Below are positions 1-18,510 of a DNA stretch of 24,025 nucleotides, piece by piece; position 1 is the first letter of the stretch; each line of letters opens with the position of its first letter. Location of the stretch: contig CAXIUT010000057.1 in assembly GCA_964035545.1 (NCBI GenBank), positions 366,928 through 390,952 on the forward strand, written 5' to 3'. The translations under genes and the position numbers were made by a program. A model generated the notes under the pieces. The model saw nothing but the letters and a program-made list of their open reading frames with translations, did not search any database and was not told the DNA's origin. Source of the stretch: Bugula neritina. Lineage: Eukaryota > Animalia > Bryozoa.

Positions 1-70
1 CCCAACCCCAACCCCAACCCCAACCCCAACCCCAACCCCAACCCCAACCCCAACCCCGAACCCCAACCCC
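1..70. repeat. Left telomere, distal tract (CCCCAA)n
   Basis: C4A2 repeats from base 1, with one variant unit CCCCGAA at 54-60. C4A2 is the Tetrahymena-type ciliate telomeric repeat. Confidence 0.97.
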
Positions 71-111
71 TTATTGTTATTGATAAAAATATTGATGATA
101 AAAATATTGAT
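71..111. other. 41-nt non-telomeric insert within the left telomere, containing a 15-nt tandem duplication
   Basis: TTATTGTTAT+TGATAAAAATATTGA (81-95)+TGATAAAAATATTGA (96-110)+T, flanked on both sides by C4A2 tracts in the same orientation. Confidence 0.9.
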
Positions 112-198
112 CCCAACCCCAACCCCAACCCCAACCCCAACCCCAACCCCAACCCCAACCCCAACCCCAACCCCAACCCCAACCCCAACCCCAACCCC
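112..198. repeat. Left telomere, proximal tract (CCCCAA)n, about 14.5 units
   Basis: Uninterrupted C4A2 repeats ending at CCCC 195-198, followed by 45 nt of unique sequence before the first ATG. Confidence 0.97.
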
Positions 199-3590: not shown

Positions 3591-5064
3591 ATGCTCAATA
3601 ATAATCACCTACTCGTTCTTCTCTCTTGCATATTTATCTCCATCTCCTGCCAAAATGACTAAGACATCATCGATATCAGCAACATCACTGTATTTCCACA
3701 AGACTACAGTCATAATATCAGAGCAGGATATCTCAATGTCACTCCCAACAATCAAGCTCTCTACTACATCTTCTGCTAAAGGTATTTCCTCTTTCATGCA
3801 GTCAAGACAACCCAGACAACGATCCGGTCATTCTCTGGCTGAATGGAGGACCAGGATGCTCTTCACTAACAGGTTTTTTCACGTAAAACGGGCCATTTCT
3901 TTTCAAGTAGAATGACCCTTCAATGATGTATCATAACTAACACGCCTGGAACAAACATGCCAACGTGATATACTTATAAAGTCCAGGAACAGTAGGCTTT
4001 TCAACAGCAACAGACAAATACAAAACTAGTAATGACACTTCAGTAGCAAAAGACAACCTCAAAGCACTGCAAATGTTTTTTGACTATCACAAACACTTCT
4101 CAGGCAATGATTTCTATTTAGCTGGGTAGAGTTATGCAGGCATCTACATACCGAGACTAGCAGAATAAATATTGAATTTCAATGACGGTGCACAAGATAC
4201 AAGGATAAATCTACGAGGAATACTGATAGGAAATGCCTGTACTCATCCCTACTAGTGCTATACAGCTAAATACTATTCAAGATTTAGTACATAATTCTGG
4301 TACACTCGAGGATTCATGGATGACAGCCTCTACAACCAGTATCAAAATACATGTATAAAATCATAAAGTTCAACTAGTTGCATAGCTATTCAAAAAACTA
4401 TCAGTGATAACTTTATCAATACTGGAGCCAATATCTACAACATCTATGCCAAATGCTACAAGCCAATCTACCCTCCTCAATATTAATCAATATTCATCAA
4501 GTACTAGGAAGTGATGAACAAATATCATTAGAAATAACATAGTTTAAAACATCCTTTGAGATGCACTGATGCCATTGGACCACTAACTGTCCTTAATACT
4601 AATTAGTTTAGATCTGCATTCAAAGTCTAAGAATTCAATGATACCCTTTTCTGGACTCCTTGCTCAGATGTATTTCACTAATAATCAAGAAACTCAATTA
4701 TACCATCGAATCTAAAGCTGCCTACTCCACTCTGCCTACTCTAGTAACAGCAGGAATCAAAATATTCTACTTCTCTGGGGATCTAGATGCCATCGTTCCC
4801 ATCCAAGGAACACTCTACTGGTTCGATAAGTATCGTAAAGATCATGGAATGCCCATCAAGAGGAGTTGGAGACCCTGGGTATCTACCAGTCAAAATATAT
4901 CAGGTATGCTATGGGAGCTAGATGCTCTGACTTTGGCGACAGTTAGAGGAGCAGGACATATGGTACCTTCAGACAAACCAGCAGAAGCAGAATAAATACT
5001 AAATGTCTTTCTTGAAAGAACCACCTGGAAATATCCAGACTACTACTTGGAGACTTCAATATGA
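3591..5064 (+). CDS. Serine carboxypeptidase, peptidase family S10, with signal peptide, 477 aa, 2 introns
   Basis: Signal-like [20 protein letters not shown]. Motifs [29 protein letters not shown], catalytic [16 protein letters not shown] and [10 protein letters not shown]. Introns at 3782-3801 and 4670-4689; TGA at 5062-5064. Confidence 0.97.
3782..3801 (+). other. 20-nt spliceosomal intron (carboxypeptidase intron 1)
   Basis: GTATTTCCTCTTTCATGCAG; removal gives YYIFCES|QDNPDNDPV. Confidence 0.92.
4670..4689 (+). other. 20-nt spliceosomal intron (carboxypeptidase intron 2)
   Basis: GTATTTCACTAATAATCAAG; removal joins WTPCSD to KLNYT in the frame carrying GDLD and GAGH. Confidence 0.9.
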
Positions 5065-5145
5065 ATAAACCTATGTGACCATTTTGATTAGTTCATTCAA
5101 TAATAATAAATAAATATCCAACAGAGAGGATGATAGTCGACATTC

Positions 5146-5245
5146 AGTCTAGATAGAGATATTATAAGTCTAGATAGAGATATTATTAAGTTGAGATGCT
5201 AGACATTAAGTTTATATATGAAGTTAGACAGTAGATGTTATTAAA
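5146..5245. repeat. Decaying intergenic tandem repeat, ~21-nt unit
   Basis: AGTCTAGATAGAGATATTAT twice, followed by degenerate copies, between convergent stops at 5064 and 5300. Confidence 0.65.
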
Positions 5246-5299
5246 TTTAAAAGAGATTAATTTTAGATAGATATTAGGTTGAGATAATAATCAAATAAA

Positions 5300-8200
5300 T
5301 CACTGCTGGTAGTACTAATTTTGTATGTTGATGACATCTTTCCGGTGTTTATTATAATTTTTATCTCTATTGATTTTACTACTACTATTGTTTTCCTCTT
5401 ATTTCTTTTTTTATTTATTGATGTCAGATTGATAGTTGATTTTAGCCATTTCTGACGACTTCTTTGTGATATCACTATTAAACACTATTTTGCTTTAAGA
5501 ACTATCAATAGTATTTTTGGACTACAACTCTATAAATAGTTGTTCCAATTATGAAGACTTAGATATCTATCCGGCCAGTAACGTCTTATTTTTTTATTAG
5601 AGATCACCTGTTTTTCTATTATAAAGAACCATAAATAGATTTTAGTGTTTTCTTTTCAAACTGATTCCTTTTTATAGATTTTATCTTTCGACCAAACAAA
5701 CAATCACATGTCTGCCTATATTTTTCCTAATTTCTGTTTCCATGTTGCTGTCGCAGGTGTAGCTTTGCAAGATAAGATGATATTTAACAGCCATAACATT
5801 GAATTTATTTCTTTTATTAAAATGAACCAACAAAACAATCAAATTCTTATTCAGTGACCTCTTTAGCTTATTCAACTCGCCCATATCCCATCGATTCAAC
5901 CTAGTTACAGAATTCACACTTAGTGTCTGATTACTAGTTGAACTCACTGATAACCCAGAATCATACTTTATCTTTTACTATTTAAAAGATGGAACTTATA
6001 GCTAGAATTTAGATAGATATTGAGAGACTTGGGAATTTTATAACTTCCTTATAGATGATACTCTGGTATTTTAAAACAAATTAGTTATCGAATTCAAATT
6101 GATGTCTGTTAGCTTCGGAAGTAGTACCTTCAAGTTGTTGCTTTTAAATACTATCGACATCTGCTACTTCTACACCAGTTAGTTAAATAACTACATTGGC
6201 ACCTATCGCATCATCAATAACAACAAATTACCACCGTCATGTAGCTTCTTCAACTCACTTATACTGCTATACAAAACAGGGTAAATCTTTTAGTTTTGAG
6301 AACAAGCAGCCAACAACTACCTCTTCTGCTGCATCTACAAATTCTGATGATACACGATATTTATTTTAGAATAATCGTCCAGCCGAACCATCTTGCATGA
6401 CTACTTATCAGGCTACTACTACCTATCTCGACTCTATATAGGCAAATTACCTTCAGACATCTTTATACTTGACGCGTTGCTACTCTGATGACCACTCTCG
6501 ATCTTCAACTAGTTTTTATCACCTTAAATTTCTTTCTATTCCGATTTTATCTATTCTTCATGCTAAGATTATTGTATTTTTTAAAGATATGATGACTTTT
6601 TACTATAACTTTTCTTTATATGCATCAAAAAAGGCTCTATCTCACTATACCTAATATACAAATGCTAGCTATCATCCACATACTCATGATTTAAATAAAC
6701 TAGCTTCAACCTTTGATTCTAAACATGATATTTAACCAATTATTGAGGTTACTTTTGAGTCTAACTGACAAAAACAACAACTTGTTTATTAGGATTATCA
6801 TTAATATACTATATTACTTGTTAAATAGTCAACTAAAGAAGCTAGCTTTACTTCTATTGCACAATACTAGATATCTAGCTTTAATCTTTGAGTTTAATGA
6901 AGCTGATTTAAAGCAGACTGTCAAGTATAGTTGATACCATATGATTAACTTGTTTAATTTTATTGATTAATTTAACAACATCAGTTTCAGTATTCAGATT
7001 ACCATCCTAATCAATCCAATTTTAGTCCTCCAAACAAAACCAGCGATATCTATCTCCATATCTAGCACGTAATATATCTATCCATCGATTATTGACTTCA
7101 CTATACACCACCACGCCTATAGAATTCTCAAGTCTACTACTCAGACTCAACTAACTTTGATAATAACTCTAAAATAACTATTTAAATATCTCTGTTTTAG
7201 ATGAATATTTTCTAAACTATCTCATCTGAGGATTCTTCTGCATATAAATAGTAAGATTTAACTATAAAATCTCATCTTCTCCTTGGAATAACCAGTTGCT
7301 TTGACCTTTGTATTTTGTTAGTAAAAACTAAAATAGGTCACTCCAACCTTCGTATCTTATCTTATTATATTAATCATAGCTTTTGTTAAGAATTGTCGAC
7401 AGTTCAGATGTTTTAAAAAATATATTTTTGTTGAAAGTTTGCTATTAAGGGTAGATTGTAGAGACTAATGGAAGAGTTAGAGGACTAAAACCACTAAAAT
7501 CATCATGACTCAATGTATTTACCTGAAAAGAAGGTTTTTCTTTATCTTATTGAACCTATATTTTCGAAAAAGAATTTATCTTTTTATTAATTGTTTGAAT
7601 TGGTTCAGGTTACCAAGAATCAATAGTAAACATCTTTTAGTCAACCAATTGCGGTATCTCAAGGTCAACCAATTGCGGTATATCAAGGTCAAGTATTGAA
7701 GGAGCAAACTGAATAGGCATCTTTTGAACCTAAAATTCAAGAGATTTGAAAGGAGGATAATGATTACAGGCAGCTACAGGATATTAAAAAGGCTTAGATT
7801 ATTGACTACCTATTTTATGCATTATTTGATTAACTGAATTTATATTGAGAGAAATAGGTGAGATTTATACTTATTTTCTTTATATCATTCTAGAACTAAC
7901 TTCTTTTCTTTATATCATTCTAGAATTTACCTCTTTTCTTTATATGTATTGAGGAGTAATCTATTTTCTTTATATGTATTGAGGAGTAACATTTTTTCTT
8001 TCAAGACATCTAGAATTAACCTCATTTCTTTATATGTATTTTGGAGTAATATCTTTTCTTTCAATACATCTAGAATTAACCTCTTTTCTTTATATGTATT
8101 TTGGAGTAATCTCTTTCCTTTATATGTATTGAGGAGTAACAGATCTTCCAGAAGAGATAGTTTTTTGACTACTTCTTTCTTAAAACAAAGACTATCTAAA

Positions 8201-9313
8201 CGAATAATCAGATTCTTATCCAAAAAAACTTCTTAATTATCCAATAATATCAGATGATTGATCAGATATTTCCCATAACTTCCATTTACCTTTTTAATTA
8301 TTAACTAAAGCTCTGAATTTATTTATCTCATTGTGATACTTCCTACATATTATAATTTTATTCGTCTCCTAACTCAATTCATTCTCTGTTCTACTTTGAT
8401 TCTGCAAAGACTCTGTCTGAGGGTAGTAACTCGAACAGCCTCTGCTAGAATAGGATAGATCTTGGGAATATATATCTTTCGTAGTACTATAATAGTTGCT
8501 ATTGAGGAGTTATTTACGTTGTGATACTCTTTGTTTTTTGATCATGATAATAACTTCCTAAAACTGTCTAAAGGAATCCACTTTAAAGTTATTTTTATTG
8601 GTTCTTTTTTGATAGGTTAGCAACATCTTGGATATCATTTACTAACAAATAAAATGGATTTGTTTTTATTCCTATCTTCTAGAACTTGAATTAGTATTGC
8701 TCCAATTCGACAACTACTTCTACAAAATAACAGTCTAATCCTGTCTTTTTATATTTGGTTATTCCTAATTTATTTTGATTGATTTTTGTCTGATGATTTC
8801 TTTTACTCCATCCAAAAAGGCTATATCTTCAGTCCAGTAGCAATATATATACTTTTACTATTTTTTATTGTTCATTTTATTAACCTACCTCAAATAGCAC
8901 TTCCTCTCAACCAATGAAAATACCACCAACTTTAACTAACTTTGAGCACTTAGCTAGTTCTGAACAAAAGAACAACAAGACTACAACAACTAGTAGTCGA
9001 TAATGATGCAATACAAATGACCCTTTCGATATGAGTATTTGAGCAGCTCTCGGTAATTACTAAAAAATACTACATTCTCTCCATAGTATCCCTTCAACTA
9101 CTCTACCTTCAGTCGAGTTGTCTGCTTTTATAACAATTATTCGAAAACCAGTAATGTAGCCATTTTACCCACATCCAAACTATTCATTCTCACCATTGAC
9201 AGTCTACCCTGACCTATTTGACTTCTAGTAGATAAATTAGACCAACTCTGATGCTTCAATAACCTTCCTTTCCTGTCGTTCTGACACTCAGACATCGCGT
9301 ATTCCCAACTCAT
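5300..9313 (-). CDS. Uncharacterised ~1337-aa protein with ~7 degenerate alpha/beta (receiver-like) modules and a central repeat linker; paralog of the adjacent 3008-aa protein
   Basis: One frame with no TGA from ATG9313 to TGA5300-5302; an upstream in-frame ATG at 9415 would give 1371 aa. Includes ORFs 9137..9325 and 5681..5947. Shares blocks with the neighbour, e.g. IIICRKYHNEINKFRALV vs IIICHGYHSEIEKFRALV, LDDYSKINIVY vs LDDYSKVRIVY, and LLLLMMREVP vs LLLLMMKEVP. Confidence 0.85.
7640..7693 (-). repeat. 24-nt in-frame coding duplication (DL[D/E]IPQLV x2)
   Basis: GTCAACCAATTGCGGTAT(C/A)TCAAG repeated on the plus strand. Confidence 0.85.
7871..8140 (-). repeat. Nine tandem 30-nt coding repeats (10-aa unit, e.g. 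ITPQYIERKE / VNSRCIERKD)
   Basis: VTPQYIERKE, ITPKYIERKE, VNSRCIERKD, ITPKYIERNE, VNSRCLERKN, VTPQYIERKE, ITPQYIERKE, VNSRMIERKE, VSSRMIERKE, all in frame in the 5300-9313 gene. Confidence 0.92.
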
Positions 9314-9483
9314 TATTATATTCACAGCGGAAAAACTATAAAACCATTAATAACTACAATAAAAGTATTAGTCAACACAACCACAACTCAACTCGTAATA
9401 TAAAACAACACCCATTAGTATCTATCATATTCAATATTATTTTAGAAATATATATTGTTATAATTAGAGATGATCACAAGGCA

Positions 9484-12400
9484 TCAACCTGGAAAATATT
9501 CATCGTTTCTAGCAGCCGGAGGACTAAGAGTCTACATGCGACTGGTCAACTTGCTCTTGCTTCCACTCTTCATATACCTTCTGGAATAGGTCGATTATTT
9601 TGATTTGGGTGGGACAAAGTCTCTAGCAAAACGAGGTGTAGTGCCAAAAGTGTTGGGCTAGTATTTTTGAATATATCTTTTTCCTTAGATATTTTTAGTA
9701 GCTTTATACTTAGTGCCCACATCTTCATAAGGCATAGCTAGCGAATACTTTTGGAACTAGTCCATGATAAACCTCTCGAGATCATCTTTCTTAAAAGTAG
9801 ATAGCAAGTTCTTCACCCGAGGATTATCTCTTAAATCTTCAGGAGGATTAAATCTTATCACATAAATCAACTCTTTCTTCTTGCTGACTATCTCCTACAA
9901 ATAAGGAATGTCAGTGCTATTAGCTATCAATATGCTTGATGAGTTATTGTAGGTGTCAATGAGTCTTCTAAAATCGGGTACTGATTTGTAAGGCACAAAG
10001 TTAATGTTCGAAAAGTTTTATCCCAGCTTCATCCGAATATGATTATTGTCAGGTTACTTATAAAAAAGAAATGCCTTCTTAGATTTTTGGTTGCTCAAAC
10101 CTACAGAAAAACGTTCATTATTAGATAAATTCACAATAGATGTCTTCTTCATCTCAAATCGAGATGCAGCTCTATTACTCTAAGCATTAAATCTTATCCT
10201 CTCATTCTATTGATAAAGATCAGCGATTATCTTGTCCAACTATGAAATCTTCTTTATCTGACCAGACAAGTACGGTCGGTAAGCCTCGATTCCCTCGTCA
10301 TGAGGATTGTCAGATTATAGGACAAAAGCAGTTTGAGGATATTTCTTTTTAATCATGGGCACCTTATCCAACATATTTCTATCAACCACAGTTATAGTCA
10401 CGTTGTCCTTTCTATCTCGAATATCATTCTAAAGGTTCATAGAATTAGTATACCCCTGAACGAGCACATTGAATCTCTTGATGGCATCATCCACCTATCC
10501 ACGCTTATTGTTATCGACCACCAAAACTATCAAATCTCCTGTCAACCTCTGCTTGATCTTCTCTATCTAGTTCTACTGCAACAAATTGCCAGGATCGATG
10601 ATCGAATGCACCATCAGTCGAGTCACATTGTCCATATCAGCAGCCTCCCCCTCAAACTGATTCTGATATCTCTAGCCTTACCAGTCATCTGGTTTGGTTA
10701 TGGTCGGACGCTTATCTAGATAGGTCTAAAACAACTTCAAATACACATCTACCTGCTCATCACTCAAATATTTCAAATTGTCTCCTTATTGGTCAGGTTC
10801 GTCCTCCTCAAGGATAGTCTATAACCCCTCTATATCAGAATTCGACTTCTTGGGAACTATCATCTTCACCCTTCGCTTCTTTATTATAGTTTTATGCTGC
10901 TTCTCAACCACGTCCGCCAAAGCATGAGGCACTTCTTTCATCATCAAAAGCAACAAACTGTCAGACTACTTCATAAAGGTTTTTATCTCGTCCACATCTT
11001 TATACACAGTGGGATAGATCTTATTGTTCTTATCTGATGCAGATAGCAGTCTTCTCTTGCTCTAAAAATCAATATCACGGTCATACACTATTCTCACTTT
11101 AGAATAATCGTCCAAATTACGAAGACTAGTCAACTAATCCTCCACACCACTGCCCTACAACTTCCTTATCAACCCAGGTATCTCCTATTCTCTCATCATT
11201 GTCACATTGCCAATACTTTTAAAACGATCAGGCTCCTCTCCCACCACTATCACATAGTTCTCAGGATTCTCAGACAAAGCCACCATCCTGGGCGTCACCT
11301 CAGTTGATATTATCACCTGAACAGCACCACTTTCGCTAGCCGGAATGCTGCTCTGATTCGAAAAGAAAGTAGCCTTATTGGCAAAAAATTTGCCTACAGG
11401 AAATAAGTTCTTCAACTGATCATCGATATTCAACACGTAGTTCTTATTCGCTAGGATGTTCTATAGATTATTAGCAGGTTTTATGTTAGAATCCATACTC
11501 GGCAAAGGGTAGTCTTCTTCCTAGTTATCGACTCGAACAGACACCCTCTACTTCACATAGAAATTATCTTTGGGATTCGATTCTGTCCTTGTATTGACCT
11601 TCACTTCTAGCTATCCTCCTCCTCTATCGTAGTTATTGACTCTGGCATTGATGCGACTATTTTGAACGAGCTGACTATTGCTTGGTTTAAGATTGGAGCC
11701 AGGAATGATAAAGCTTTTTCTGTCAATATGATGAAATTCGACTCCTTAGCCAGGAATGCCTTTATTACATATGGCATAATTATTGAATATATTTTATATT
11801 TCCTGTTGCTAGTCCTAAAAGCACACTACATATACTTTTCTATACTTGCCTTTTATCTAAAAAGCTATATTTTCTACATCATCCATACTAACATAAACCC
11901 GATCATCCAATCCTCTCAACCGTCTCCTCTGAATCAAAGTCTGGACAGTCCTCTCTCCCTATCCCTCGTGATACACCATGAAATCTATTCTACCAGCACT
12001 TTAGACCTAGTTGATGTGTTTGATGACTGGATCTATTTAGTTAAATTTGATATAAAGGGGATTTTATTCATCAACAAAATCTATTTTGAGAAGAATCAAC
12101 TTTATCCTACCATTTACTTCATCAGCCTATGACATCAATGCCTGAGGAACGTGTTTTATATCTTTCGCCTAGACAAATAAGACCATCAATAGATTACTTT
12201 ATTTTTAGTAGATTTGCAAGAGTTCCTATTTTGTTCTAAAATAAATATTTCTGGCTTTATCCATAGTGGCCTTATTACTCAAGTAAAAATACTTCATATC
12301 GTTATAAGCATCAAAAACATTCTTATTAAACATAGTAGCAAAAACATCTTGCTTCCTCCTCAAACGAACATCCACCACGTCCATTAGTATCCCCTCAGAA

Positions 12401-15400
12401 TCGATCCATCTCTAGCTATTATCAGTCAATCCTATCCACCGATGCTTGTTGTATTTATTCCGCAAAGTTCCCATCCGAAATTGATCACTCAAATTGAACA
12501 AAACCACACAAGGTGATTCTTGTTTCTACAAATATCTAGATAAATCCATATAGTCAGAATAATAAGTCTAAGGCAAATCCCAAAAATCATGCATCACTAT
12601 TCTAGATTTCCTAGCCACCACCTACTAGTTCAAATACCCTTTCTATGAGAAGTTGTTCTTGAAATCTTTCATGTACTATTTGTTTTATAAGTAAACTACA
12701 GGATGCAGAGGTACTAGTTCAGGTCTTCCTGGAGAGTTCTTAATTAACCAGTTACTTTTCCCCTTAAAAAGAGTCACCAGGTATCTAAAGAGTTAAGCCC
12801 AATCTTTGAAAAATATTTTTTAATAATCCTCGTAATCAGAGTCAAAAACCAATTCCTCCTCTCCATAGCTATAAAATAAATATCTAAATTTATCATGATA
12901 AGGAGGCACTGGTTTGCTAGGCAGCATCTTTCTCAGGTACTAGTGTCCATTAGGTCCATAATAAATCGAATAGATCCAAATTCTGTAGAGATACAGCTAA
13001 TCTTCTGGAAGTTGACTATCAGTATCGACCAGTAGATAGCAAGATGGACTAATTTTAGGTTACAATTTGTATTGATGATAATTTTGTCTACTGACTACCA
13101 GAATAATAAAAGTATTTTAAGTATGCAAGCACTTATAGGTATCAGCCTAGGTCTGATACTGTTAAACACTAACGTAACTCGATTTTAGTCCTTCGTATTT
13201 TCTGAAAAGATGCGATGGGACAAGTATCAGTATATGTCCGCAGTGATTCCAAAAGCGAGGTAGGACTTCACACATGTAGGGCAGCTAATATCCTCTGATT
13301 CGATAAGGTCTTAAGAAGTGTTTCAGTTTGTCGTGATTGTCAATATGAAAGTTGTCATCAAAGATAAAATATTACATCCTTCCTCCCAGTTTGCCCTTCA
13401 TCGTCTTCAGAATAGGATCATACTTGCGATACACATTTGATAAAAATACCACTATCTTGTCATAGCCATTCAACTTCTGACCATTATTCTTAGAATACTA
13501 CTATAAATCTACCTCTGTGCGATAGGCCAGCAAAGTTACCATAAACTGATCCGGCTATAAATTCCTTTTAAGCATTTGACCGATCTGATTGAACTAGTAG
13601 TTGCTGGGATGGATTATTGCCAACTTCTGCTTTATTTTCTCATGACACGGTATCTACTTTTGTGGAAACGGAAGACCCACAAAACTGTCAGGTTCGCTTG
13701 TTATCATAGCTATCTCTCTTGTCGGGGCATGATCTACTCCACTATTCAAAATGCTGACATGAATACTACCCTGAGAGTCTTTTGTTTTTTTCAATACCTA
13801 AAAACCATAAGATTGAGGAGGAAGGTCTACCTTCAATAAATTGATATTAGCGAAAGAAGGAGGATTACTATTTAGGGTGCCATTCATCACTTTCACTTCA
13901 CATATTTTTTTTTACTATGCTTTAATACAAAAAGTAGGATAGAAAACCAAACAAGAATAAGCCAAAGACAAGGGAAAAGATGAATAGTGGTCAATACTAT
14001 TAAGAAGTTGATCAGCCTTACCAATACTAACTTAAAGGGGTTCTATTGGTTCAATAGGTTATCCAGTGATGGGTATCTGGTTCATAAAATGTTTGAACTA
14101 AATAGTTTTTCTGGCAATAAACTATCTATTTCCAGTACTAGTATAAGATTTGTCATTTCTGCAGTGATCATTAACAATAAAATAGCTAATATCCTGACGA
14201 TTCAAAGTCTATAACGTCTGTCTTTCATTTTAGGATGGCAATATGACATGACTAGGTTCTTTTATCTTTCTAAGCTAATCGCCCAAATGATGGTACACAT
14301 ACACTATGATATTAGGATTTCTCTTATTTATATTTATCAACTACTATCTATATTTCTGGGTAGGACCCTGCTCACTTATATACAAATTGTACTTTCCTCT
14401 GTAATTTAAAGCTTTGTTATATCTATTCTAAGGCATATTGAACAAATAAGTCAATAGCTATCTTCTATCGTTGGTTTATAACAACCAATTCCTATCACCA
14501 CTGTCTCCTTTAGATATCTTCAAATCTGATGTTTTCATATCGATAAATTTACAATCACGACCATACCGTTGGTTGAAGTCGTAAACCTGTCGACCTGACT
14601 GCTCATCACCCACAAAGACATGCAAATAGTCATAATTACTAGTGACCTTCAAAAGCTACGGTAAGGCATTCACACGATATCCATTATGATTTATAATCAA
14701 AGAATCGTTTTTACTTGTCAAGGCACTCACCTCCTGCGAGGTCAACTTATACTAGTCCTGAATGTACAGCTATATCAACTAGTGATTGATGTTTTTTTAG
14801 AGTTGAGCTTCAGGTTTACGAATATTGAACCTCAAATATCTTAAATAATCAGTTACTTCTGAAGGATAAGTACCGATAAAGAGCTAGTTAGAATCGTCAA
14901 CCAATTTACTTTAATCAAGATTTCTAAAATCATACTACTACTTCCGCCCAGCTACATAGATCAGTTTAACACAGTTCATCCTACCAAATAAATTCAACAT
15001 ATTCTGTCTATCTCTATACGGACCCACCACATAAAACATCTATTTTGAACTCTTCTGCACCATCTCGTTCAAGTCCCCCAGTGACTTAGGGTACTAAACA
15101 GTTGCCTTTAAGACGCTTTTCCACTTACCTACTTCTTGCTAGTTGATGGCCATGGCATTTCCATCAGCATTTTTGAGAATAGCCAAAACAACAGGATGCC
15201 CCACACTCGACTGGTAAAATATATTCTTGTCCCTTCCATATATATTCAACAAGTATTTCTAGATCTCCTTCTTCTAAGAATTCCTAAAAACTACTCGGTT
15301 CTTCAAATTCGGATGCACGTTCTCCCCACTCTCTATTATATACTTAACGTTCCCCTTCTTATAGTTCTCCAACTTGTCCAGGCATTTGCTGTATTCATTC

Positions 15401-18400
15401 AAAGTCCTCACATCCCTAACGATTATCCAAATCTGGTGTCTGCCCCACTCTCTCTCCCGCCCGACTATCCGCTTCACTTCTTCCTTATCACTCGCATACT
15501 AAAATGTAAATTTATTAGTCAGTGAAGAATACTTATCCAAAAAATAGTAATAATGCAAAGTATTCCTATCTATAACCACGTGAGGTGTCAAATAATTATA
15601 CTATATTGGATTTACAGTCGTATTGCATAACCATGTGCCAGTTTGCCTATAATTTTTAAAAGATTCTCTGATGCTAGAATTAGCCTTATCCACCTTCTTA
15701 GACCCATGCTCCTTTATTACTAATATTTTTATGTAATAGTTGTTGCTTTTGTATTTTTGCTGCTCAATTGTCCTCTATATATCAGCCACAGCCACCCTGC
15801 TGGTGTCTTCATTGATAACGATATAGTATTTAAACAAAGGACTCTCTTAGTCGATAGTTTGAACAAGGTCATCCAAAGCTTTAAAATGTATTTTGTTAGC
15901 GACATTGTTTCTATCGCTATCTTTACGATTCCAAACCTCATCGACCATCTCACGACTACTCCTATCCTTCTCGTCATAAAACACAAAAATACTTTCATCA
16001 ATAAAAATCGAATCGAAAGATGGAGAAGGACACCGACCGATTATATACTCCTAGATACGCTACCACCGACTCGATACAAACTTAAACCTCTCATACCGGT
16101 TATGTTCATCAACTAACTAAGCAAACTATCGAGGAACATCACTGTATATTATAAACTACTGCCTCAACTATCCTTTCTAGTTCAAAGCCAGCTCCTTCAT
16201 AAACTTCAACTCGCCCATCAGCTCTTTCTTCCTGGCAGGAGATTCATTTGAGTTATACGCCCAAATAATAAAAGCCAAAGGCTATTCAGCTTTATTCAGT
16301 ATCCTCAGCTAGTTAGGATTCTTGTAGTACTATATCTTAATATCACCATAGAAATGTTTATGCAGTCTATTTTACATCTTCTGTGATTATTAGTCTTTCA
16401 AGTTAGCTGGCAATCTCACACTGATCATATTTCCCTGTCTAAAATCTATGTATTTAGGCAGTTCTCTATTCTTGCGAACAAAAGATTGATCCAATGTCAA
16501 CTAGTTGTAACATTAGTTCTCAATAACACTCACCTAAGGATCGATTTGCTTTATCAAATCGTATATTAAAGCTTTAGGACCAGACGTAAATACTTTCACC
16601 TCCGGCTTAGGATTCTAGCGATCAGTTATATTCAATATATACACCTTCTAAAACTGCTATAAAACCCTCTGGGCGTCTCGAACAGTATAATCATTGGTCA
16701 CCACTATCACACTATCTTTAAGAGTAAGAGTCTCAAGAGACAACTTCAACCACTACTTATCCATATATGTCCTTTTCTTCAATCGAGGAGTATCAGCTAT
16801 ATACGGCTGCAAATCATCCAACTCATCAGCAATCGACTCCTGAATCAGCAAATATACATTAGTGCCAGTTAGTCCTTCAAAGGGATGGAACAGTTTGTCT
16901 CTTTAAGTCATTATATTCTATAGATCATCATTTGGTCGACCCCTCACATCACTCATACTCGACTGTCCCAGTATATTGCTACTCAAAAATACATTACTGC
17001 CGTGTTTTCCGACAGCACTAGATATAAATTTGACATTCTACACTCCCTATCCATTCCGATAACTAGCTATAAACTCATTAATCGCCCTAGTGTACTCAGC
17101 AGTAAAAGATCTGAATCCTCCAGGAACCATAGCTATCGTGAAGTTGTCCAGTGAGTTGACTCCCTCTCTCAAAAAAAGAGAAAACTAGTCCACATCGTTA
17201 TAAATTATCAACTACATATGGTTTAAGGTGTTTCTATGGGCATCAAACAAACTTATTGCTGCTTAGTCATTTGCATGAGCCAAAATTATCAAATGCTTGC
17301 TATGGATTATTCTATCGTATTACTCACTATCCAGTCTTTATAAATTTTTAGCCTATTAGTTTAGAAAATCTCTCAACCTCACCATGAAATCAGAAGATCC
17401 CTACTAAATTTACCACAACAACCAGTTATTGTACTTCTGTGCCCTCACTAAAGCTCTAAACTTCTCTATCTCAGAATGATAGCCATGACATATGATGATG
17501 TTCAAATCGTTCTTATCCAACTTGTTGATTGCTTTGATCGATGAACCCAACACAGATGTACTTACCTGGGATCCTACCATAGCCTACATGATTCCGCTCT
17601 TCATAGATACTGGTTAAAAGTTAAACTAGCTCATTATTTTAGAAGTAGCCTTACGAGCCACATCCATCTACTTTGTCTGAGCCACCTCTCGCTCTCTGAT
17701 CTTTCTTAACACGTCCTAGAAGTCCTTGAAAGAGTATATTTGCAGCCATGAAGACTTGCTCTTCTTGCGGTATGTTTTATATATTCCTTTGAACTAATCT
17801 TCCATCTTCTGCTAATAAAAGAAATGAAGCGTTCTCTTTTTAATCTTCTTCCCTGCATATTTGTTGGTCAAAGCCCATGTCTTTACATGTTTATTCTCCT
17901 CTCTGAGTCTGAAATCAAGTTGCTGTTCGATAGCTCCTACCATTTTGTCAGGATAGTCTTTTTATTAAAGATAGAAGTATTCGATATAGTCCGGAATGGC
18001 TTATATTCTTTTTTTGCTTCTAGCTTTGATCTCCTTATCATACTCCTGTTTTCTCAATAATCCATAAACAAATATTCTGACGCGGTTGCTATTTTCTTCT
18101 CTTTCCTGCTGGGCAAAAGTACTCGCCCAGTTGAGATCAAACTTGGGCACAATGATATAATGCAGATCATTATCGTTGTAGTTGTCTTTAAGCAGCTACT
18201 TATGATCTTTAAAAGTCTTAATCTAAACTTTATCTCCGAACTTATCGAGCAACAACTATTTGAAATATGCCAACCCATCGACACGATTGTCCTACAGAAA
18301 TTGATGAATCTTGACATGGACATACTTCTTATCATTCTGTCCCTGTAAGTGAGGTAGAGTCGATCTGATATGACTATCTATCTTTTGAACTGTCGACTGG

Positions 18401-18510
18401 ATCCGAGAGTTACTTTTAGATAACAAGTGCTGTGAATTAAGTGCATTGGAATGCTGAGAGTGCATGTGATGATTCGAGTGCAGCTAGTCGTAGTTGCTGT
18501 TCTGGTACAT
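9484..18510 (-). CDS. Giant uncharacterised 3008-aa intronless protein built of ~20 tandem degenerate alpha/beta modules (CheY/receiver-like by pattern)
   Basis: I translated the whole frame: ATG18510, preceded by an in-frame TGA, to TGA9484-9486, 9027 nt with no internal TGA. Includes ORFs 15274..15477 and 11185..11436. A hydrophobic strand / helix / (Y,F)x(D,S,N,T)xx(E,D)(L,F) / hydrophobic strand pattern recurs roughly every 90-180 aa. The ORF is secure; the fold is an inference. Confidence 0.88.

Follow-up and report, generated by a model that had tools for sequence, protein, structure and literature searches.

The DNA analysed here, hereafter the window, is a stretch of 24,025 bp (34% G+C) from the Bugula neritina assembly GCA_964035545.1 (contig CAXIUT010000057.1, positions 366,928 to 390,952 of the forward strand). 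It starts with C4A2 repeats and finishes with G4T2 repeats, and because telomeric repeats stand at both termini the window is a complete macronuclear chromosome of a ciliate. More than half of it is occupied by two neighbouring genes on the minus strand, a giant gene (9484..18510) and a short gene (5300..9313), which the alignments below show to be true tandem paralogs, in all likelihood ancient, of an orphan multi-module gene, both intact. A preliminary description, made from the letters alone, had divided the giant into 20 modules and proposed that the pair was remodelled by the loss or gain of whole modules.

We found by open reading frame (ORF) scan that long ORFs emerge solely when TGA is the only stop. 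Under this code the giant runs for 3008 codons plus TGA with no intron needed, and contains 150 in-frame TAA/TAG codons read as Glu. The frame around the short gene is open over 5300-9424 (1374 codons plus stop), with a likely ATG at 9311-9313 and TGA at 5300-5302, giving ~1337 aa; a related strain has a one-base insertion (+A) at 9357, which places that position outside the coding region and supports the ATG at 9313. Both frames are unbroken, as the preliminary description had stated, and the chance of such a TGA-free frame, calculated from the off-frame TGA density, corresponds to ln P = -127 in the case of the giant and to -43 in that of the short gene. The stop of the giant is followed after 170 nt by the short gene, on the same strand, and together they take up 13,211 of the 24,025 bases, the ~55% that had been given for the pair. 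Contigs of independent runs span the giant/short junction, so the adjacency is confirmed in near-identical strains only; it does not extend to the related contig L007, where the 2.2 kb upstream hold no giant-like gene.

The reading of TAA and TAG was examined in codon alignments with relatives from other assemblies. TAA/TAG codons of the short gene stand opposite GAA/GAG (Glu) 34 times and opposite Gln once. Furthermore, the Glu codon at position 7192 is GAG in the window strain and TAG in another strain, a change that is synonymous only on condition that TAG encodes Glu. TAA and TAG are thus Glu codons in this genome, a code that we take to be NCBI table 30, known from peritrich ciliates, and these comparisons provide independent codon-level evidence for both reassignments.

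Comparison of the two proteins by BLASTP (composition-based statistics, code-30 translations) gave three collinear high-scoring segment pairs. Block A of the giant (aa 100-387, 17350..18213) matches short aa 121-405 (8210-9064) at 28% identity (E 1e-23), block B (aa 1878-2191, 11938..12879) matches short aa 668-961 (6542-7423) at 27% (E 4e-26), and block C (aa 2459-2789, 10144..11136), which includes giant module 19 at about 10201-10578, matches short aa 1008-1328 (5441-6403) at 30% (E 7e-33); these and all further features of the pair lie on the minus strand. The collinear but discontinuous alignment noted earlier is therefore borne out, with every quoted peptide present, and the three diagonals it had led one to expect are joined by a fourth. 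This fourth region, P (giant aa 1483-1640, 13591..14064), has a diverged counterpart in short aa 515-664 (7433-7882). The direct short-giant match is weak (E 0.024), and the link is made through L007p, the 1751-aa ORF of a relative: the 150 aa of short 515-664 match L007p 516-669 (E 8e-8), which falls at the start of an alignment of L007p to giant 1490-2364, and therefore forms a weak collinear diagonal of its own.

A further likeness is seen at the very C-terminus (5303-5320 in the short gene, 9487-9507 in the giant), where both paralogs and all short-type relatives end alike: NEYYQQ in the short gene, NDEYFPG in the giant, NNEYYQN in L004 and NNEYYQT in L007. This shared N-x-E-Y-[YF] peptide may be a conserved C-terminal signal.

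Between the shared blocks the paralogs differ by whole segments. The largest, giant-only segment 1 (aa 388-1482, ~1095 aa, 14065..17349), is missing from both the short gene and L007p. Giant aa 1641-1877 (12880..13590) are kept in L007p (about residues 665-893), whereas the short gene and L009p lack them, with near-identical boundaries. "Module 16" of the giant (aa 2170-2268, 11707..12003) occurs in L004p, L007p and L009p and is deleted from the short gene of the window; L004p 2-104 align to giant 2158-2264 at 36% identity (E 4e-15), and a five-way alignment agrees. Giant-only segment 2 (aa 2269-2458, 11137..11706), formerly called module 17, is in no short-type protein, and the giant-only tail (aa 2790-3008, 9487..10143) ends in NDEYFPG. 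Giant 388-1482, 2269-2458 and 2790-2990 were found in none of the short-type proteins examined. The tail had been described as a module 20 that is missing from the short gene; it is indeed giant-only, but since the C-terminal peptide is shared the difference is internal to the tail.

The short gene in turn carries sequence of its own. Tandem Repeats Finder reports a repeat with a period of 30 nt (10 aa) and 8.9 copies at aa 429-517 (7874..8140), and a 24-nt (8-aa) repeat at 7639..7692 varies in copy number between strains, with 24 nt lost at 7640 and 24 nt gained at 7658 in runs X3 and X2. Modules 3-12 had been said to be replaced by a low-complexity/repeat linker. This holds for the ~9-copy 10-aa repeat within short aa 406-667, but the same interval also contains the counterpart of region P. 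The place taken by module 16 in the orthologues is occupied by a few acidic residues, an acidic linker (aa 962-1007, 6404..6541) with the motif NEL.IESG...GNLPIES. The linker is 51-59% identical to L007p and L009p, the motif also occurs in L004p, and the giant is without it. Judged by this pattern, the motif looks like a short linear motif rather than a spacer.

To place the pair in its family we searched for relatives, using stop-free pieces only as database queries. A word-based protein search with a 97-aa piece of the short gene returned two database fragments, and an exhaustive search of 1.84 billion representatives with a module-19 profile gave 7 matches, all of them fragments of the same family and five of them additional. 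Two scans of JGI metagenomes added no new contig, the first giving nothing and the second only a contig already known, and searches of the literature did not bring up the family. The search for further members suggested by the preliminary description was thus productive for the short type: L001-L005 and L007-L010 share 42-70% identity with the short gene and only 27-33% with the giant, and intact short-type relatives are present in at least five other assemblies. The contigs of all relatives carry TGA-only ORFs, and members of the family are known so far solely from organisms in which TAA/TAG are Glu codons (peritrich-type ciliates). One of these contigs, L002, differs from its near-identical twin L003 at positions 1-60 and 700-805, which translate like a sequencing adapter (…LIHISEPTR…) and are probably adapter contamination.

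These relatives differ from each other in that units of ~100 aa and ~230 aa are cleanly present or absent, which shows directly the variable module number that had been suggested earlier. The borders of the indels fall at the edges of beta/alpha units or within linkers; for the pair itself, breakpoints between modules had been noted before.

Next we examined the direction of change. L007p aligns to the giant over most of its length, aa 59-424 to giant 5-385, aa 523-1372 to giant 1490-2364 (33% identity, E 2e-123) and aa 1367-1664 to giant 2463-2779. Its C-terminal third is 44% identical to the short gene versus 33% to the giant, and L007p is thus a short-type protein that retains giant segments 1641-1877 and 2192-2364. 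In L009p, residues 36-164 correspond to L007p 524-650 and residues 178-1036 to L007p 902-1749; the gap in this alignment means that the ~230 aa missing from the short gene of the window are missing from L009p too. The junctions of the ~230-aa deletion in L009p and in the short gene lie a few residues apart, and L009p still keeps module 16. The best tree of block C, giant | (L007p, L004p) | (L008p, (L001p, ((short, L002p), (L009p, L005p)))), fits two nested losses. This distribution shows that the counterpart of giant 1641-1877 and module 16 were lost stepwise in the short lineage rather than gained in the giant.

It is unlikely, in our view, that the duplication is instead specific to this species group, with the giant as a fast-evolving copy that has retained ancestral modules and not as an ancient paralog outside the short types. 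In favour of such a history, the giant has a very long branch (2.4-3.5 changes per site) and a deviant amino-acid make-up, a grouping of giant, short and L002p is not clearly rejected by the approximately unbiased (AU) test (p 0.064), and no giant orthologue was found elsewhere with two stop-free giant pieces as queries. That history nevertheless requires the ~230-aa deletion to have occurred twice, in L009p and in the short gene, with near-identical junctions, and the best tree puts the giant outside the short type.

For the three remaining giant-only segments (388-1482, 2269-2458 and 2790-2990), either a single loss in the short-type ancestor or a gain in the giant would account for the difference. 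Of the "loss or gain" proposed earlier, loss in the short lineage is thus supported for two segments, while these three are polarised neither way. That the giant grew by module gain, with the three segments as giant-specific insertions or internal duplications, is a possibility to which we give the lesser weight: the segments occur in no short-type protein seen and there is no outgroup to polarise the change, but they have no internal repeat or profile likeness to other modules, so that any duplication must be very old, and both segments whose direction can be read are losses. In the history that we favour, the copies differ mainly through deletion of whole beta/alpha units, of ~100-230 aa each, in the short lineage. 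Both keep the four collinear regions A, P, B and C together with the short C-terminal N-x-E-Y-[YF] peptide.

We then asked whether the short gene is under selection. For this, contigs of four public runs were compared over window positions 5000-10900; runs labelled as a second organism diverge from the window by about 1-2%. The 39 substitutions listed within the short ORF comprise 27 synonymous and 12 non-synonymous changes, and with 3.97 non-synonymous sites to each synonymous site this gives a pN/pS of ~0.11. Indels within the ORF either measure 15, 24 and 24 nt or form +1/-1 pairs in which the frame is regained inside 12 nt: the in-frame length variants of the related strains (+15, -24 and +24 nt) fall in the region of the 24-nt repeat (7600-7692) and the +1/-1 pairs at 7916-7928 in the 30-nt repeat. 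Uncompensated single-base indels are found outside the ORF only, at 5164, 5286 and 9357. Against its orthologues the short gene has a dN of 0.16-0.43 with saturated synonymous sites. The dN/dS of aligned modules, proposed earlier as a check, is unusable as a ratio both between the paralogs and against orthologues because of this saturation.

These results demonstrate that the short gene is kept by purifying selection and is not decaying. The alternative that it is a decaying duplicate, a pseudogene whose frame is open by chance only, could draw on its length (~55% shorter than the giant) and on its low-complexity repeats with strain-variable copy number. It is already contradicted by the pN/pS of ~0.11, by the frame-keeping indels, by the ln P of -43 for the open frame, and by short-type orthologues that are intact in no fewer than five other assemblies (42-70% identity, saturated synonymous sites); we regard it as extremely improbable, and the ratio near 1 that the preliminary description had associated with decay is not seen. 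The giant would appear to be maintained too, judging from the integrity of its ORF alone (3008 codons, ln P = -127).

The domain for which a structure could be predicted is module 19, located in the short gene at aa 1184-1300 (5525..5875). A complete stop-free module 19 from L002:275-622, 84% identical to the window's own piece, was modelled with AlphaFold2 from a 9-row alignment (mean predicted local distance difference test score, pLDDT, 75.3; predicted template modelling score, pTM, 0.72). The order of elements is b1-a1-b2-a2-b3-a3-b4-(a4)-b5-a5. An exhaustive VIA-align search with this model placed receiver domains at nearly all of the top 50 positions (about 45; Z 9.5-11.4, root-mean-square deviation (rmsd) 2.3-2.9 A, ~102 of 116 residues). 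Foldseek likewise returned receiver (REC) domains with template modelling (TM) scores of 0.6-0.69, and in an atlas shape search all 10 of 10 matches carried PF00072 (TM 0.7); an earlier atlas feature search had led to PF03709, the receiver-like wing domain of amino-acid decarboxylases. Our first AlphaFold2 model, of modules 18 and 19 together (L004:596-1342, 249 aa), reached confidence in a truncated module 19 alone, gave unspecific alpha/beta matches, and has been superseded.

Collectively, the model predicts for module 19 a CheY-like (beta-alpha)5 fold that is receiver-like without being that of a canonical receiver. It shares this predicted fold with the PF00072 receivers, with pseudo-receivers such as the FleQ REC domain and with the Orn/Lys/Arg decarboxylase wing (PF03709), and whole receiver domains can be superposed on it (Z up to 11.4, rmsd ~2.4 A, ~102 residues). 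In contrast to receivers, it has no sequence-profile match: PF00072 gave none at E values up to 5 with stop-free pieces and orthologous modules, PDB sequences gave none to the module-19 profile at E up to 10, and Pfam gave nothing above noise for ten stop-free pieces of both genes and five orthologous pieces.

Positions of the receiver active site were mapped by strand position in the model and the alignments, not by residue-level superposition. On this mapping the residue after beta3, the phospho-acceptor site, is E in the short gene, L002 and L001, N in L004, G in L007, S in L005 and D in the giant, and of the acidic pair after beta1 only one residue is left, an H, D or E that precedes F or N. 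In the model, then, neither the phospho-acceptor Asp nor the acidic pair, both conserved in receivers, is conserved in this family. The residue after beta4 varies (Y/N, Q/H, E/S) where receivers have Thr/Ser. A Lys stands 2-3 residues past beta5 in all members (GEISK, GEFWK, GQIKK) and may correspond to CheY K109. What seems to be conserved instead at the C-terminal ends of the strands are KR after beta1, QxY after beta2, R/K after beta3 and LAGE at beta5, which would put the conserved residues of module 19 on the same face that carries the active site in receivers.

It is therefore very unlikely that the modules serve as functional phospho-receivers in a two-component-like relay. Such a role would fit the receiver fold of module 19 and the giant copy, which by strand position has Asp after both beta1 and beta3, but it is at odds with the lack of a match to PF00072 or any PDB sequence, with a post-beta3 residue that may be E, N, G, S or D, and with a post-beta1 acidic pair cut to a single D, E or H. 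The setting also differs from that of receivers, being a eukaryotic orphan of 1300-3000 aa with many alpha/beta units in which no output domain, histidine kinase or HPt was identified. No gene for a histidine kinase or HPt partner is found on this chromosome, whose other ORFs are the peptidase described below and unassigned genes.

The explanation that we consider likely as a whole is that the giant and the short gene arose by an old tandem duplication of an orphan multi-module gene, that whole units were deleted in the short lineage, that both genes have been maintained and that module 19 is CheY-like. Several results weigh against it. A word-based protein search with two stop-free pieces of the giant found no giant orthologue, which leaves the giant-only segments without an outgroup and the giant itself without a selection test. 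The backbone of the tree has weak support (58-71), and the clade of giant, short and L002p is only borderline rejected (p-AU 0.064). The public runs that hold the locus include no RNA run, for either gene. Only one module has a confident model, module 18 being modelled poorly (pLDDT <55). Between modules no likeness was detectable, either by BLASTP self-comparison or by hhalign of orthologue-enriched profiles, and a leave-one-out motif hidden Markov model (HMM) with flank-shuffle controls gave weakly positive z-scores. The numbering of modules from 1 to 20 therefore rests on the secondary-structure pattern. As to function, the explanation includes a suggestion that we offer tentatively and as inference only: the proteins may be non-catalytic scaffolds in which acidic or Ser-rich linkers connect alpha/beta domains of a pseudo-receiver-like kind. 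Under it, the essential sites for partner binding would be located in blocks A, B and C, with the variable modules as dispensable spacers or additional binding sites.

With regard to module likeness, hhalign against the giant-only segments was not significant either, and high z-scores obtained with the motif HMM came from overlapping segments and were discarded.

The scan identified four other genes in the window besides the pair. One is a serine carboxypeptidase gene (Peptidase_S10, 3659..5061, plus strand; Pfam PF00450, E 2.6e-12), which is convergent with the short gene. It is spread over two frames (3659-4927 and 4642-5061) and therefore contains at least one short intron. The convergent ORFs of L004 and L009 are 66-73% identical to it, and the convergent arrangement is kept in both. 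Because a convergent Peptidase_S10 gene lies downstream there as in the window, the L004 and L009 genes are positional orthologues of the short gene. Beyond the short gene and the S10 gene, the chromosome is not syntenic with these two contigs. The L007 gene sits in a different neighbourhood (L007:1-2258 and 7512-10302), where the 2.2 kb upstream of it contain no gene of the giant type and an S10 peptidase is missing on the downstream side. At the left telomere (window 1-198), the C4A2 run is broken by an AT-rich insert of ~41 nt with a short internal duplication, after which the repeats resume.

Taken together, the pair resembles ordinary domain loss after tandem duplication in its adjacency, common strand, collinearity, clean unit deletions and the retention of both copies. 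Unlike the ordinary case, intermediates are caught in orthologues (1751 aa, then minus ~230 aa, then also minus ~100 aa), and the parent family is without annotated relatives (7 matches among 1.84 billion representatives). Three stages of erosion, of about 1750, 1500 and 1340 aa, are thus preserved in related organisms, with the giant adjacent as a reference. This is a rare case in which the steps of domain-architecture erosion can be read directly and in which the unit borders of a protein without annotated domains are revealed. The evolutionary process, domain loss after duplication, is itself ordinary; what is new, and where the value lies, is the orphan family and its possible poly-receiver architecture. 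The model of module 19 offers a first structural handle on this large family, a predicted receiver-like fold without phospho-acceptor chemistry. Extending from this one model, it is conceivable, though we hold it with reserve, that the giant is one polypeptide of ~15-20 consecutive CheY-like pseudo-receiver domains, an architecture that to our knowledge has been described for no eukaryote. Together with the short-type genes, it would then form a peritrich-specific family of poly-receiver scaffolds, in which the basic pocket of module 19 (KR, R/K, LAGE) may be a binding site for an anionic ligand or a phospho-protein and not an acceptor of phosphoryl groups.

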